DNA from: Neoechinorhynchus agilis
Lineage: Eukaryota; Animalia; Acanthocephala
Direction: 5' to 3'
DNA: 64,000 bases
NCBI GenBank assembly: GCA_051530055.1
Contig: CM121341.1
Location: 13,556,784 to 13,620,783, forward strand
The notes under the pieces were generated by a model. It ran no database searches. It was not told where the DNA came from and worked only from the letters and a program-made list of their open reading frames with translations. Numbering within the stretch: position 1 is the first letter of the stretch; each line of letters begins with the position of its first letter. Positions 12,528 to 63,436 of this stretch are shown here, in pieces. The translations under genes and the position numbers were made by a program.

Positions 12528-15500
12528 TTTATAATAATAATAACACGTTTTTTATTACATACACAAACAAGCACGGGAACCATGTATCTTAGGATTCGTA
12601 ACTCGGAAGAGCTGCAACTCGCCGCATGTCCAAGTCTCTCCTCCGATTCAGGCCGTAGACTCATGGGTTGATTGTGCGATGGCAAAAAATGATTTTTATA
12701 TAGTGTGGTGCGCGGGAGAGGCGGATTGAATCTGTTCGGGCATCGTGTATTTCGGACGGGTTCCCTTGGCGAGATGAACGGGAGAAATTTAGATGGAAGG
12801 GAACGCAGGGAGGTAATGTATTTATCGAAGATTTTGGAAAGGTGTTCTTCGATTGGTGGGAGGTCCTTGGAGCAGATTTTGGAGGCTCGTTTATTTAGGG
12901 AGGAAAGCAAGCGCAGTTGATGGGTGGATAAATTGCAAAAGGTTGGGTATGCATATGAGATTGCTGGGACCACAACAGACCAATAGAAATGTGCTAGATC
13001 ACGTGGGCTGACTCCGAGGAAACGCAAGCGTTTGATTAAATGCAATTTAGCAGTGGCTTTTGCTACGACGCCATTAATGTGCATGTCCCATTTGAGGTTG
13101 TGTTGGAAGATTGGGCCCAGAATGTGAAGCGATGTGACGCGTTGGATATCGAGAGGGAGCGGTGGAATATCAGTCCTAGGTTTTTTAAGCGACGGAATAA
13201 GTTCAAATGATTTGGAGAAATTAATTGAGAGTTGATGGGTACGTGAGACTGAGCGAGAGCGATGGAGGAGCATGGGTTATAATGGTTAGGCCGTCCGCAT
13301 AAAAGAAATATTTAGCGGACGTTGAGAGGGGTGTAAGGTCGTTGAGGAGGATATCGAAAAGTAAGGGCGATAGTACTGCTCCTTGTTGCACACTGCAATG
13401 TATGGGAAGCTTCGTTGAGCAGGTATTGCCGCATTGAAAATATTGCGACCGGTTCGCGAGGAAAGAAGTGAGCCAGCTTATTTGCCAGGGTAAGAAGCCA
13501 AACTTCTCGCATGCCATAACGAGAAGATCGTGATCTACAGAGTCAAAGGCCTTGGCAAGATACACCTGGATGAGCGACAAACGAAAGACGGTTCTTGGTC
13601 AAGATTGCACAGAATCGAATCGTAAATGCCCAAGAGGGCGCCGGTACAACAGAATCCTGGTCGGAAGCCGAATTTGTCAGACGAAATGTTTTGTAAAAAG
13701 ATGGGGAGGATGCGAGTTTTGAAACATTTTTCAATAATTTTAGAAAACGGCGAGAGTAGAGATATAGGGCGAAAGGAAGTCAGAGAAACGGGTTTCCTCG
13801 CCTTAGGGATAGGAATGACGCGAGCAGTCTTCAGGCAATCTGGAAAAATCCCCGTTTCAAAGCTAGAATTGATGATATGAGCTAGAGGCTCAAAGATCAA
13901 GGAAATGATGATGCGAATGGCCCAGATGGGAATCGGAGCGTTAGGGGATGATGTACGTGGTAGTTTTTTGAGGAGTAGGAGAACCTCAAGAGAGGAGACG
14001 CGTGAATGAGGAACGCAGGTCATATGGTTGCGATCGTCGCAGGGGCGTACGACGCTTGTGTCAGTGGAAGATTTGGGAGGGCACATGGTAGCGTTCATGG
14101 AGTTGAGGGTGTTTTCGAGCTGACATTTATGCAGATTGGCGAAAGGCTGAGATCTGTGAAGGCCTATGGCATTTTTGATCTCGCTCCACCAGGAACGATT
14201 AGGGGATGGCGGTAGTTTGGAAAAAATAAGGGTTTTGCCAGCGTGAAGAAGACGCTCAGTGAATCTCTTGTGGAGTTCTGGGTAATCGGGATGTCGGGAA
14301 TGAAATGATTTTTTCACCTAGTCTTGCAGTGATTTTAGTAAAGGTGAAAACCATGGTGGATCACGATTCGACATACGAATCATTTTCCGAGTGAAAGACA
14401 GTATTTTGCAATGCCGCCATGGTTTTAGACGGGTCGTTGCTGTATATAGAACTTCAGATTCCGGGTAGGGCATCACTTACCTTGTTGAAGAAGGAGCGAG
14501 AGTGATGCTCACGTTTATCCCAGACCGGGAAAGGGTCGGAGGATTGTCGTTTCGGAGGAACAAATAGTCTAAGGAGGATGGTGCAGTGATCCGAGGTCGC
14601 GACGGGTGGGAGTTGAATGGGAGCGGAATATTTGGCTATATTGGTAAAGATTTTATCTAGTTTGGATGAACCACGCGAGGGGAAGTTTACTAGTTGTAAG
14701 AGATCAGAGAGTGACGGTGGAGCAGGGAGACGGTTGAAGTCTCCTAGAATCATGAAGTGTTGAGAATTTAACGATAGTTTGTCATTAATTAAGGTATCGA
14801 TTTGTTCAGATGTTGCGGTGGGAGTTGAGGCAGGGGGACGATAAACACCGGCGACGGTCATTTCACGGCTGCCGTTACGAAGAGAGAGAGAGTTGAAGGT
14901 GAACCCATTCGAGATGTTCTGATATAAAATAGTGACGGGTGGAGATGTTGTATGGTAAGGAGGACTTCAAGTAAATAGAGACGCCTCCTCCAGAACGATC
15001 ATCTCTAGTTAGGTGAAATGAGGAGAATCCGGGGATGATGGCAGTGTTCTTATTAAATTGGGAGCCAGGTTTCCGTAATGACGAGAATGTCGGCTTTGGT
15101 GGCCGTAGCGACTATGGACAGCTCGTCGAGTTTTGGTAGGATGCTACGAATATTGGTGTATATGATTGTCGGGAACGGCTGTTTAAGTGGGGTGCTCAGC
15201 AAGGAAATGGGTTGGGCGGGCGAGGTGGGTGCAAAATCGGGTGGCGTTGTGGTTGACTGTTCATTTAGGGTGAAAGTGGATTGTTCAAGGCTGACCGAAA
15301 TTTTTTGGGTTTGCCCACCGACAGAGTGAAAGTGAGTTAAGTTAGGTATGGCTGCGGTGTCTTTGTTTTAGTAACTGAGCTGGGTTTCTGTGGTGACCAG
15401 TATGTCTGAGGTGTGACGATTTTCTGATAAGGGATGGAAAACAGTTGTATGTCTAATTTCTGCCAAGGAACGGCGGATTCCTTTGGAGGTATCCAAAAAT

Positions 15501-34100: not shown

Positions 34101-35142
34101 AATTTCCATTATTACTTTTTCAAACGAAAGTTATAAAAAGCTCGATAAAACTTACGTTTGAGCATAGGTCAAAACTTTGAAGCTACACGAATCTTAAAAA
34201 TGATTTCTGCCGTTGATTCTTAAGCTTCATTAAATATGAGTACAAGCACTTTTTCCATCGCGGAATAGTTGTTTCGCTTACTAACGTGTTTTTCGGCATG
34301 CAGACTTACGAATTGAAACGTGACTCTTAATTATGCGATATGAGAGACACTCACTGTATATCACTGAGACTATTGTCTCCTTCGGCAAACCCATTATCCG
34401 TTGATTTTAATAGGCATTCCGTTTTCACACTAATTCTATTGAAAATTCGTTTCTGTACTTCGGAGCGAGTACTCGACTTGGATTCTAATAACCACTTCAA
34501 GCGAAATCGAATATTGACTTATAATTAAATTGTTCACTCGACCAACCGTACTAATCCTTGAGTTCTGATCAATGCTTTTCGAGATATTTATTTTTCAAGA
34601 TCTTCGTCTTCAAACCTTTGGAAAATAATAGACAATTTAATCAATAATCACAACCTAAAAGTGTTTCTTATTCCGTTTTACATGAATCATTACAGAATTG
34701 GAACCTTCAAAATATGAAATTCAAGATTATTTGTTCATGTTTCTCAACGTCGCCACTAAAAAATCAACTAGTAGTGCCTCATCGTTTTGTTTCATTCAAG
34801 CAATATTTTTGACTATGCCAACAATTGTTTAATCTAAATCTTTTTAGCTGAAAAGAGCTGTAGTCCATATTTAGATACCATCAATATATGGGGATAATTT
34901 TTTAAAAGTAAATGACAGAAAATTACTCCAGTCCTGGTGTTTGTTTAATAGTAAAAACTAAGAATGTTGTAACTCCTATCCGATTTCGGGGAATGATTAC
35001 AAGGCTTTTCTAGAGAGGCAATTCGACCGTTAAGAAGCGAGTTCAGAATAAAAGCATCTTTAAGACTTTAATTTGATTATCGGAATGCTACTATTTAAAA
35101 AGTCAAATTAATCTTTTTGTGGAAAGTATATAAACGTTTTAG

Positions 35143-37839
35143 ATGCCTAAAATCTTAGTCATCTGTGATCAATTGCCGATAAAGGTTGAACAATACGATT
35201 CAAACACTGATTCACCACATGAAAAGTTCAAAATCGATCGAACAAGTGCTGGTCCAGCTGTTCCATTTCGAAGTCTTCATGATTATGATGTCGTATTTAT
35301 TGGTTCCATAAACATTATGGTGGAAGACGAAGACGATCAAAAGCAATTGGCAGACCTTTTGGCACACGAAAAGATGATGCCTGTATTTTTGACTCAATCG
35401 GAATATCAAGCATTCCACAATGGATTCGCTAAGCGGACAATTTGGCCTCATTTTCACTACTTTACTCAGATAACCACATACACTGACTCAAAATACGAAG
35501 AATATTACGGATTTAATCGCCGTTTTTACGATGTAATCCTCCGTAACTGCATAAACGATGACCAAGCTCAGTACATCTGGATTCACGACTACCATTTTCT
35601 ACTTTTGCCGAAAATGCTAAGAAAAAAAATAGACCACGTTGGAATCGGATTTTTCCTTCATATTCCATTTCCATCCTACGAAGTGTTCAGAACTCTTCCA
35701 TGGAGGAAAGATCTCCTTTTCGGCATACTCGGTGCTGATTACGTTGCTTTTAATACAAACGCATACCTTGAACACTTCCTTGAAACGGTGAAACAAATAT
35801 GTGGAATACGGTCGGTCAACAGTCGAATTCCAATAGGGAATCGAGTTGTTTCAGTCGGTTTCTATCCCATGGGTATTGATTATGATCTCTACGCTGGACT
35901 CGATAAATCCATAAACAATCACTGACATTTTGATTTCAATAGAACGCGAGGTCTTAAAGTGAATATCGAGATCAATGTCATGTGAAGTACAACCATGCTG
36001 TCTTGGTCCTGATTGGAGTCTAAGCGGTTTAAACGAAAATGGTGCTAGGACAATCCTATCGATCCAAAGTCTCGATTACACAAAGGGAATAAAGCAACAA
36101 TTGAAAGCTTATCAACATTTCCTTGAAGAGTTTCCTCAATATAAAGGACTGATAACTCTCGTTCTGATTGTATTGCCCGCTGTTCATTTTATTTCCGAAT
36201 ATAAGAGCCTTAAAGAGGATATCGAAATTACCGTGACTAAAGTTAATTCTAAAGTTGGCGGTGTTCATTGGTCGGCTATTCATTACATAACAAGACCCTT
36301 CGATATTTCTGAGATAATTACTTTGTATCGAGAAACTGACATTTGTCTTTGTATGCCATTGCGCGATGGCATCAATTTAAGAGCTAAGGAGTTTGTAGCG
36401 TCGAAGCATGAAATGAATCGTGGAGTTCTCATACTAAGTGAAATGAGTGGGTCAGCTGAACAGATGGAGGATGCGTTGGTTGTAAATCCAAACGATAGAA
36501 CCGAAACGGCTAACGCTTTTTTCAATGCAGTTCAGATGAGCGAAGATGAACAGATTACGAAACTGAGAGCTTTGCAAGAAAATGTGAGACTCTATGATGC
36601 CCACAAATGGGCTTCCATGATTATGAGGGGATTGCAAGAAGCAATAGATAATAATAAAACAAATAAATCGTTTCAGCTGACAAATGAATCGATTCTCCAA
36701 GAAATGGTTGAGAATTTCAAGCGTGCACATAGGCGGTTGCTACTTCTGAAATACGATGGAACTTTGGTGGCACTCAGTAGAAATCCTGACGACGGCAGTC
36801 CCGATATGTGGCTAAAATCCAATCTGAGGAAACTTTGTAGTGATCCCAGAAATCAAGTAGTCGTTGTCAGCGGTACGCTCACGGTAATCACATGTCGCAA
36901 TCTGAAATAACGTGTCAGAATTATTATTATACCTATAAAAGTATCACATAGAATCTCATTTTATAGCAAAACCGGTTGGGTTTTGTACTTATTCTTTGAC
37001 AAACAATTTTATGAACTAATATGAAAGTTATCATCGAAATAGAAATATATTTCTTTAGTTAAATACAGTTGAGTGTCACTTTGCTCATTCTCATAATATT
37101 CACTGGGTTGCAATTTTTTTATTACAGCTAACCGTAAGGCGCTATAATCGATGAAATATTGATATTATTTATTTAATAACTTTTGTGATTGTTGTGACTT
37201 AGAGACAAGAGCACATTGAATGAATGGCTCGGTTCTGAACCTAACCTCGACTTGGCCGGCGAGGACGGCGTTTGGATTAGGGTAGAAGACGTTTGGAATT
37301 GTGCTGTTAATAATACAGACTACGTGGACGTTGAAAAATGGAAAGAGGAAGTGAGGGAGCTCCTTGAGAAGCTATGTTCATCTACTCCAGGAACCCGGAT
37401 TGAAGAACGGGCCTTCGCACTTTTATGGCACTATCGTGGAGTGGAACGAGATTCGGTGAATATGCGGTTGCGAAATTTTGATTCAAAATTGAAACGCCTA
37501 GCAAAAAAGTACGACCTTCAATGCGTGAGAGGAAACAACTTAATAGAGATTCGACCCAGTAGTATTAAAAAAGGACATGCTGCGATAAAGTGGTTAAGGG
37601 CGCTGAATGCTAAAGAAGCCGCTAATGCAATTACGGGACTCCAGTGGGATTTTATTTTGGCTATAGGAGACGACTCGACTGATGAGGACACCTTTGAGGT
37701 TGTAAATGCGGCTGACCGAACTGCTTATACGGTTAAAGTTGGCGGGTTTGGTGGCGGTGAGCACACTGCTGCTCGGTTTGCACTTTCTAACGTTGCGCGA
37801 GTTCGGTGTGTGATTGAGACGCTTATTAATTCGGGTTAG
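35143..37839 (+). CDS. Fused trehalose-6-phosphate synthase (GT20)/phosphatase (HAD-IIB) of bacterial type, spliced, with catalytic residues substituted
   Basis: WIHDYH, GFFLHIPFPSYEVFRTLPWR, PMGIDY, LDYTKGI, LRDGINLRAKE, ILSEMSG, NPND, YDGTL, TPG..IEE...L.WHYR, GDDSTDEDTF, YTVKVG. Coding blocks 35143-~35896, ~36020-36872 and ~37205-37839; the junctions are only partly resolved. Confidence 0.9.
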
Positions 37840-38919
37840 GGAGAATCGATTGAATAAGATATCTGTTGAATGATAGTTATCGACACGTCTGGATGTAATG
37901 ATTCAAAATGGATTCTTTAATGCCAGGAAAAGCTTCAGGCGAAACCCAGATAATCACATTTAAAATATTGATTTTTTAAAGTGAGCTGACAAATTTTGTC
38001 TATTTCAAAACTTTGTAGTAATTAAAATGAATGATGCCGCAGCAAATGATTTCATTCAAAATCAGCTATCTTGAAAATAACAAAGATATCGTTGATTTAA
38101 AAACCCCTCATCCTCACGATGACGAAGGAGGATCATAGCCAATAGGTGTAAACGGAGAAGAGGGTGGCATACGACCACCCATTGTTTTAAGGATCCTATT
38201 ATCCTTTGTTGAGAGAGAGCAATTGCTCTCAAATTTTGGGTCACGCCCAAATAATGGCACGTTTTATTTGAACCAGGGAAAATACAAGCCAAAGAACCAT
38301 GAACCTCAGATATCTAGTGAAACTTCTATGGATTTCTAGGGATTATTTGTGTTTTTAATGTTTCATCTTTGCTGCCCCAAAACGTTGAGTTGTTAGGTTG
38401 TTGTTTTCCGCTCCTTCATCCAAAACGATTCGCAGATATCGCCCAACAATAAGAGTTCCTTCCAAAGTCAAAATCATTAATCGATAACCGAGAAGAATAT
38501 TTATCCTATCCTACAAAATCATGGCCGTTCACAATCAAATTTTCTAGCTATGGGCGTTTTCTTTCCAAAACGACGGTATTTAAAAGATTGATAATCTGAC
38601 TTACTACGCTGGAGCGATGAGAATATATTTGACCAGCTATAACCGGTTGGCAAACCTTCGATACTTCTCGAAGTCGAAGCTTCTAAACGGTATTTACGCA
38701 TTCTTATCAGTATCCTAGAAACTCCAATGTCTTGTATTGATGTTCAATTGCCGGATCAAATTTATCTTAAACTCCAGAAAATTGGGTTAACCAATATCGA
38801 TAGCGACGGTGGAGCAATCCACATAAATACGCGATCAATTGTGTACTGAATCATCATGTGCCTTTTAATTAGTTTGAAATTCGTTTTTTTATTAAAGTCG
38901 GGTAGTGCACAATTTGATT

Positions 38920-62090: not shown

Positions 62091-63436
<1,346 letters not shown>

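Follow-up and report, generated by a model that had tools for sequence, protein, structure and literature searches.

The window analyzed here, a stretch of 64,000 nt from a 19.4-Mb animal chromosome of Neoechinorhynchus agilis (Acanthocephala), an eoacanthocephalan, contains on its plus strand (positions 35143-37870) a gene for a 764-amino-acid (aa) paralogue in which trehalose-6-phosphate synthase (TPS) is fused to trehalose-6-phosphate phosphatase (TPP). We found that both halves of the predicted protein are very probably catalytically inactive and that its open reading frame (ORF) is intact and expressed. With a probability of about 0.6, we regard it as a functional gene, neither half of whose product is catalytic, whose protein, by analogy with yeast and plant paralogues, may serve the trehalose machinery without catalysis, either as a subunit, as a regulator or by binding a ligand.

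Glyco_transf_20 (PF00982) matched the raw ORF blocks 1 and 2 with 200.4 and 185.7 bits (cut-off 32.5), spanning profile positions 3-249 and 273-472 of 473, and Trehalose_PPase (PF02358, HAD superfamily) matched blocks 2 and 3 with 33.2 and 114.3 bits. The TPP half was also similar to the phosphatase domain of A. fumigatus Tps2 (5DXL, E-value 7e-33). Residue equivalences were taken from alignments to the solved C. albicans Tps1 (CaTps1), E. coli OtsA and fungal Tps2 phosphatase domains, and family counts were based on a MAFFT alignment of 312 sequences, i.e., the gene and 311 fused TPS-TPP proteins (Table 1). The residues lost from the gene are conserved in approximately 95-99% of these 311 relatives. 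In the TPS half, all three residues equivalent to those that hold the phosphate of glucose 6-phosphate (G6P) in OtsA (Arg9, Tyr76 and Arg300) were gone, the Arg-Lys pair for the beta-phosphate of uridine diphosphate (UDP) was broken by loss of the Arg with Lys289 (Lys267 equivalent) kept, and the glycine loop was altered. Besides, the Met363 equivalent was changed to Ile beside a kept Asp361 equivalent. The contacts to donor sugar and ribose, His148 (His154 equivalent), Asp383 (Asp361) and Glu391 (Glu369), were in place, as were the HDYH and FLHIPFP motifs. In the HAD half, motif I (DxDG[TS]) lacked its nucleophile, and the Lys found there was unique to this gene among the 312 sequences; motif II (SGR), motif III (Lys676) and the acidic pair of motif IV (GDDSTDED) were kept. 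Catalysis by HAD phosphatases proceeds via an aspartyl-phosphate intermediate, and without the Asp nucleophile none can form. In CaTps1, Y89 and R318 bind the phosphate of G6P, R280 and K285 bind the UDP beta-phosphate, and the single change Y89F left no detectable activity in vitro (PMC5527307). Because binding residues of the TPS half known from this work were replaced and the HAD nucleophile was lost, both halves are very probably inactive as judged from the sequence.

Substitutions had accumulated in 22 of the approximately 96 columns with at least 95% conservation, compared with 2 in the active paralogue ACOME3_002138 (P0157; Fisher p ~1e-5). By half, these near-invariant columns were changed in 19 of 71 cases in TPS and 3 of 25 in TPP, and the gene ranked second among the 312 sequences for substitutions in conserved TPS columns.

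Most of these changes had been recognized in the initial annotation, which listed SNR to CDQ with loss of the Arg9 equivalent, loss of the Tyr76 position, DRLDY to QSLDY, PSR to PAV, GMNLV to GINLR, DYDGT to KYDGT and AEHG to GEDG, and described HDY, FLHIP, KG and GDD..DE as kept; the alignments bear out all of them. The glycine loop GGL is indeed altered as was claimed, but its motif reads AGP, and the GPA given previously was one residue out of register. SGR had been described as broken at the intron; at the 36873>37200 joint of the mRNA, VVVSG is followed directly by RDKSTL, and the motif is intact. The claim of open reading frames stands, with a spliced ORF of 764 codons, but the exons that carry it (coding parts 35143-35911, 35988-36873 and 37200-37839) are not the raw ORF blocks.

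Table 1. Features of the TPS-TPP gene in the window. Residue counts are among the 311 fused TPS-TPP relatives.
Feature	Position	Strand	Description
3' acceptor ttttag	35137-35142	+	directly before ATG at 35143; 21-nt leader joined here
Exon 1	35143-35911	+	start codon and N-terminal Rossmann half of GT20 (TPS) domain
Gln10	35170-35172	+	exon 1; OtsA Arg9 equivalent; R in 305/311
Ala36 / Pro38		+	exon 1; glycine loop GGL to AGP (Ala = OtsA Gly21 equivalent); G in 305/311, L in 301/311
His92	35416-35418	+	exon 1; OtsA Tyr76 equivalent; Y in 302/311
Lys97		+	exon 1; Asn of FSN (to FAK); N in 307/311
Asn204		+	exon 1; His of GFHT (to AFNT); at least 95% conserved; column that we take to be the OtsA Gln185 position
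Intron 1	35912-35987	+	76 nt, 33% GC, ends TA..AG; joint 35911>35988 in 4/4 runs
Exon 2	35988-36873	+	C-terminal half of GT20, linker, start of TPP domain; contains Lys289 and PLRDGINLRAKE
Ser284	36068-36070	+	exon 2; OtsA Arg262 equivalent (DRLDY to QSLDY; AGT); R in 310/311
Val322	36182-36184	+	exon 2; OtsA Arg300 equivalent (PSR to PAV); R in 309/311
Ile385 / Arg388			Met and Val of GMNLV (to GINLR); M in 303/311, V in 291/311
Lys511	36749-36751	+	exon 2, motif I; HAD nucleophile Asp (DYDGT to KYDGT; AAA); D in 305/311, K in 0/311
Intron 2	36874-37199	+	326 nt, 29% GC, ends TA..CT; joint 36873>37200 in 4/4 runs
Exon 3	37200-37870	+	rest of TPP domain, coding to 37839; SGR completed (Gly552/Arg553 at junction), motif III Lys676, GDDSTDED
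Asp574	37264-37266	+	exon 3; cap His of AEHG (to GEDG); H in 297/311
Stop TAG	37837-37839	+	

Contigs from four RNA runs were placed on positions 34600-38400 of the window. All four runs agreed on a single fully spliced mRNA, with a depth of 90-390 across the exons and 0-3 in the flanks. The spliced coding sequence (CDS) was 2295 nt long, corresponding to 764 codons and a stop, and contained no internal stop codon. The sole variant seen in the transcript was a C>A change at 36223 in one of the four runs, which is synonymous (ATC to ATA, Ile). At the loose 5' end before 35143, runs X1 and X4 carried a non-genomic leader of 21 nt, ATATTTAAAAACTTACAAGCA, which was not found within the window and was probably joined by spliced-leader trans-splicing. 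We know of no trans-spliced leader reported for acanthocephalans; for bdelloid rotifers, a 23-nt spliced leader is cited in PMC1925144. At the other end, a tail of 25 A residues behind 37870 (loose end, run X2) placed the poly(A) site near this position.

After acanthocephalan proteins, the best matches of both P0001, the protein annotated for this locus, and P. laevis P0003 were Bacteroidota proteins of approximately 725 aa named “bifunctional TPS/TPP”, including those of Haliscomenobacter hydrossis, Lewinella/Neolewinella, Hymenobacter, Reichenbachiella and Ekhidna. In an IQ-TREE phylogeny (37 rows, 730 columns, LG+C20 PMSF), two P. laevis proteins (GJ496_010909 and GJ496_002947), the present gene, ACOME3_002138 and the partial sequence P0002 formed one clade (support 100/99). 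This clade was sister (96/93) to the Haliscomenobacter/Lewinella group, inside a set whose named members are all Bacteroidota. Fungal sequences fell outside this set, and Mastigamoeba was placed elsewhere among other, probably bacterial, sequences. Nesting within a bacterial clade, together with processing as an animal gene (introns, leader and poly(A)), supports a putative Bacteroidota ancestry by horizontal transfer, in agreement with the bacterial origin suggested previously. The sole ground for rejecting an origin from a pan-metazoan TPS is that none was among the best matches, and the tree included neither arthropod nor nematode TPS.

Within the acanthocephalan clade, the gene was sister (100/99) to ACOME3_002138 and P0002, with an end branch of 1.37 vs. 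0.16 for ACOME3_002138. The latter has all catalytic residues, a gene length of 2563 nt and a location 4.52 Mb upstream on the same chromosome, and is the kind of active paralogue for which the initial annotation had suggested searching the genome. GJ496_002947 of P. laevis is likewise of the active/active type. In GJ496_010909 (P0004) the TPS half is intact and the TPP half is degenerate, with DYDKS, TFR, AEDG and GDDLRDQE at its motifs. A second, very divergent lineage (100/100) consisted of ACOME3_002177 of N. agilis (P0389), also on the same chromosome, and GJ496_008704 of P. laevis (P0139), both of which combine a dead TPS half with intact TPP motifs. Placement of this pair had a support of only 83/64 on a long stem, and the two lineages may have had either a single origin or separate ones. 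Our literature search on trehalose genes in acanthocephalans found nothing.

The divergence of the intact expressed ORF is incompatible with neutral decay, and the gene is very probably not a decaying pseudogene. Among the columns with a common residue in P0157, in P. laevis P0003 and in the bacterial consensus, the share changed in the gene was 20% in the most conserved class (at least 95%) and 24%, 34%, 46% and 50% in the successive classes down to <40% conservation, compared with 1% to 51% for P0157 over the same classes. Thus, constraint on the gene is relaxed, yet it follows the conservation pattern of the family. In 300 runs, random substitutions were also introduced into the CDS up to the proportion of residues changed in the gene. 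At the observed 23% aa change none of the 300 simulated sequences was stop-free (mean, 9.8 stop codons), and even at 10% aa change only 2% were. Identity to P0157 was 49% in the TPP half, vs. 47% between two active orthologues, and 46% in the TPS half, vs. 61% between active orthologues; therefore, it is the TPS half that has accelerated, and conservation of the TPP fold is as tight as that in real enzymes. A plain pseudogene without expression, which had been considered in the initial annotation, is contradicted as regards expression, as spliced transcripts were present in all four runs and a poly(A) tail was seen in run X2. What could still be argued is a transcribed pseudogene in early decay, its frame open by chance and its transcript representing noise or a regulatory RNA. 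The long end branch and the relaxation at conserved sites fit this explanation, as does the failure to find a close orthologue in either a 1.84-billion representative library or a 5.8-billion cluster search. However, it would have to accommodate the simulations, substitutions that still avoid conserved columns, a TPP half as conserved as in active orthologues, the precise removal of introns and an abundant, leader-capped and polyadenylated mRNA, and we consider it very unlikely.

We propose instead that duplication of the active ACOME3_002138 lineage gave rise to the gene, which would then have evolved approximately 3-4 times faster, mostly in its TPS half. This half would have lost its grip on the G6P phosphate, the Arg for the UDP leaving group and a normal glycine loop, and the TPP half, at a rate of evolution not above that of active orthologues, would have retained the HAD fold and motifs II-IV but exchanged the nucleophilic Asp for Lys. 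The protein may work beside ACOME3_002138 and ACOME3_002177, much as Tsl1/Tps3 accompany Tps1/Tps2 in yeast. The sensor or scaffold role put forward in the initial annotation would likewise follow from analogy, with Tsl1/Tps3 and plant class II TPS as the models. With the whole phosphate-binding triad gone, the TPS half is unlikely to sense sugar phosphates, although the damage to its nucleotide-sugar site is only partial. The TPP half is the more likely place for any ligand binding that remains. It is plausible, if speculative, that Lys in the Mg/phosphate position could hold a phosphate and thereby allow non-hydrolytic binding of trehalose 6-phosphate (T6P) by the TPP half. Several points weigh against a functional non-catalytic protein. 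Complex formation with the paralogues is suggested by pure analogy. The RNA runs carry the label 'RNA?', expression is poorly measured by the depth of contigs, and the evidence for expression is at the level of mRNA, not protein. In view of the missing orthologue, the argument for selection rests on ORF retention and the substitution pattern, not on dN/dS; the nearest paralogue is 47% identical and synonymous sites are saturated. Finally, retention of the donor-site residues (His154, Lys267, Asp361 and Glu369 equivalents) makes residual nucleotide-sugar binding or a changed reaction possible.

The last of these points leads to a neofunctionalized GT20 enzyme, i.e., one with a changed acceptor (a non-phosphorylated sugar or polyol) or donor and a new product. 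Besides the kept donor-sugar and ribose contacts, the losses concentrate on the acceptor-phosphate triad, and GT20 includes enzymes for other substrates, e.g., VldE, which was among the PDB matches. However, the Arg262 equivalent that stabilizes the leaving group, nearly invariant in the relatives, was also lost, the glycine loop, GFHT motif and Met363 were changed too, and the HAD half, without a nucleophile, is beyond such rescue; we consider a new enzyme unlikely. A weak but real enzyme appears very unlikely. It would be a slow isozyme in which, for example, Lys511 and Asp513 support slow hydrolysis or His92 replaces the Tyr; three other family members have His at the Tyr76 position, six have Asn or Glu at the nucleophile position, and HAD motifs II-IV are intact. 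Against this, Lys cannot form the aspartyl-phosphate intermediate, and several TPS residues were changed together, when mutation of the Tyr76 equivalent alone abolishes Tps1 activity in vitro (PMC5527307). A more far-reaching version of the non-catalytic reading, possible in our opinion but doubtful, is that acanthocephalans rebuilt a yeast-like multi-subunit trehalose synthase from one horizontally acquired bifunctional Bacteroidota gene via duplication and complementary domain death, in which the dead/dead protein would serve as a regulatory subunit. Its HAD pocket, nearly intact but with Lys replacing the Mg-binding nucleophile, would then hold T6P without turnover. Its four types would be active/active (ACOME3_002138 and GJ496_002947), TPS-dead/TPP-intact (ACOME3_002177 and GJ496_008704; an old type common to both classes), TPS-intact/TPP-dead (GJ496_010909) and dead/dead (the ACOME3_003187 gene described here).

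The gene is probably an independently evolved non-catalytic TPS-TPP paralogue in an animal, of bacterial ancestry, that resembles Tsl1/Tps3 of yeast and the class II TPS of plants but is descended from neither. In yeast, Tsl1 and Tps3 are non-catalytic paralogues of the catalytic subunits, with GT20-like and TPP-like regions. The dead/dead gene likewise coexists with a TPS-active and a TPP-active paralogue (ACOME3_002138 and ACOME3_002177, respectively). It differs in its independent origin, from a Bacteroidota-type bifunctional gene duplicated inside an animal, and in keeping perfect HAD motifs II-IV with the nucleophile alone replaced. Plant class II TPS are reported to have conserved phosphatase motifs, whereas the nucleophile position of the worm protein is occupied by Lys; lineage and origin differ as well, and we saw no sign of an SnRK1-like partner. 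According to PMC12478316, PMC12589705 and 10.1101/2025.08.17.670254, these plant proteins (AtTPS5-11 type) are TPS-TPP fusions that have no detectable activity and are expressed as regulators. The pseudo-TPS at the N-terminus of fungal Tps2 (PDB 5DXF) also has a GT20 fold with degenerate substrate-binding residues. Both halves of the worm TPS domain matched 5DXF (E-values 1.7e-29 and 3.1e-21), and long fungal GT20 proteins in our set were changed at overlapping positions (Arg9, His154, Arg262 and Arg300 equivalents). However, the phosphatase attached in Tps2 is active, a pattern that fits the P0139/P0389 paralogues better. The bifunctional TPS/TPP proteins of Bacteroidota (Haliscomenobacter, Lewinella and Hymenobacter; Cytophaga hutchinsonii type) share the architecture and a length of approximately 725 aa, with 38-43% identity, but keep every catalytic residue, and the worm gene differs from them in having introns, a leader and poly(A).

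Horizontally acquired TPS genes are also present in other animals, i.e., bdelloid rotifers and tardigrades, and some of these animals are related to acanthocephalans (PMC4498783, PMC8277472). The TPS genes of bdelloids have no TPP domain, cluster with those of non-metazoan eukaryotes and retain the active-site residues; these two studies did not cover acanthocephalans. In our literature search, no non-catalytic TPS-TPP paralogue was found described in an animal. In yeast (Tsl1/Tps3) and plants (class II TPS), proteins of this type have a central regulatory role, and the full complement of half-dead paralogues makes the present case a natural test of the evolution of such complexes. Because vertebrate hosts lack trehalose synthesis, drugs against acanthocephalan infections of fish farms could possibly be aimed at this pathway, for which it matters which paralogues are catalytic.

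Both introns of the gene were unusual. They have no GT-AG ends, and a 2-nt TA on both sides makes their exact ends ambiguous. Both are AT-rich, with inverted repeats a few bases inside the ends that could form a hairpin bringing the ends together. RNA depth was zero inside intron 1, which contains the TGA that terminates raw ORF block 1. Intron 2 has terminal inverted repeats TCACGGTAATCACA and TGTGATTGTTGTGA and was retained in approximately 3% of the RNA depth (unspliced contigs at a depth of 5-14 vs. ~300). No other copies of either intron were found in the window. These introns look like transposon insertions, similar to miniature inverted-repeat transposable elements (MITEs), that are removed under an unusual splicing rule, with excision at the DNA level as an alternative. 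Comparable cases are the non-conventional introns of euglenids and the non-canonical introns of Fritillaria. The RNA data prove that N. agilis removes TA-flanked, hairpin-forming introns without GT-AG ends, and standard gene predictors will miss such introns; our search of the literature found no paper on unusual introns in acanthocephalans.

Insertions were also seen in other genes. ACOME3_002138 has an in-frame insertion of 123 nt (L001:4402-4524) with a strong terminal hairpin, GGAAAATGGTGAAAATTTGCA and TGCAAATCTTTACCATTTTCC, and the annotated ACOME3_002177 protein has an in-frame insertion that reads ALLV...NP; both are absent from all relatives. Judged by their sequence, they are probably unrecognized introns of the same unusual class. 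Since their positions differ from those of the introns in the dead/dead gene, they would have been gained after duplication. In DIMT1, at 62684-63036 on the minus strand, an insertion after VANVPY has no GT-AG ends, but its two ends can pair with each other (TGCAGG...TTGTCAA / TTGACAA...CCTGCA). The frame would be restored by a 2-nt direct repeat at the borders, and the predicted architecture resembles that of the TPS introns.

The public model of the gene, NCBI KAL7676937.1 (“hypothetical protein ACOME3_003187”, N. agilis; P0001 in our analysis), is identical to the product of ORF blocks 2 and 3. It is truncated and mis-joined: the 512-aa protein begins at the ATG of ORF block 2, lacks exon 1 with its 256 N-terminal residues, and crosses the junction between exons 2 and 3 via a forced GT-AG pair that joins VSGTLT to STLNEW and turns RDK into TLT beside HAD motif II. 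Neighboring ORFs in the window are animal genes, such as those for CSE1/exportin, a PP1-type phosphatase and an EF-hand protein. An ORF at 13538-14317 on the minus strand, located between the phosphatase gene and the FoxO genes, had a weak match to the reverse-transcriptase domain RVT_1, below the Pfam cut-off, and is probably a retroelement remnant.

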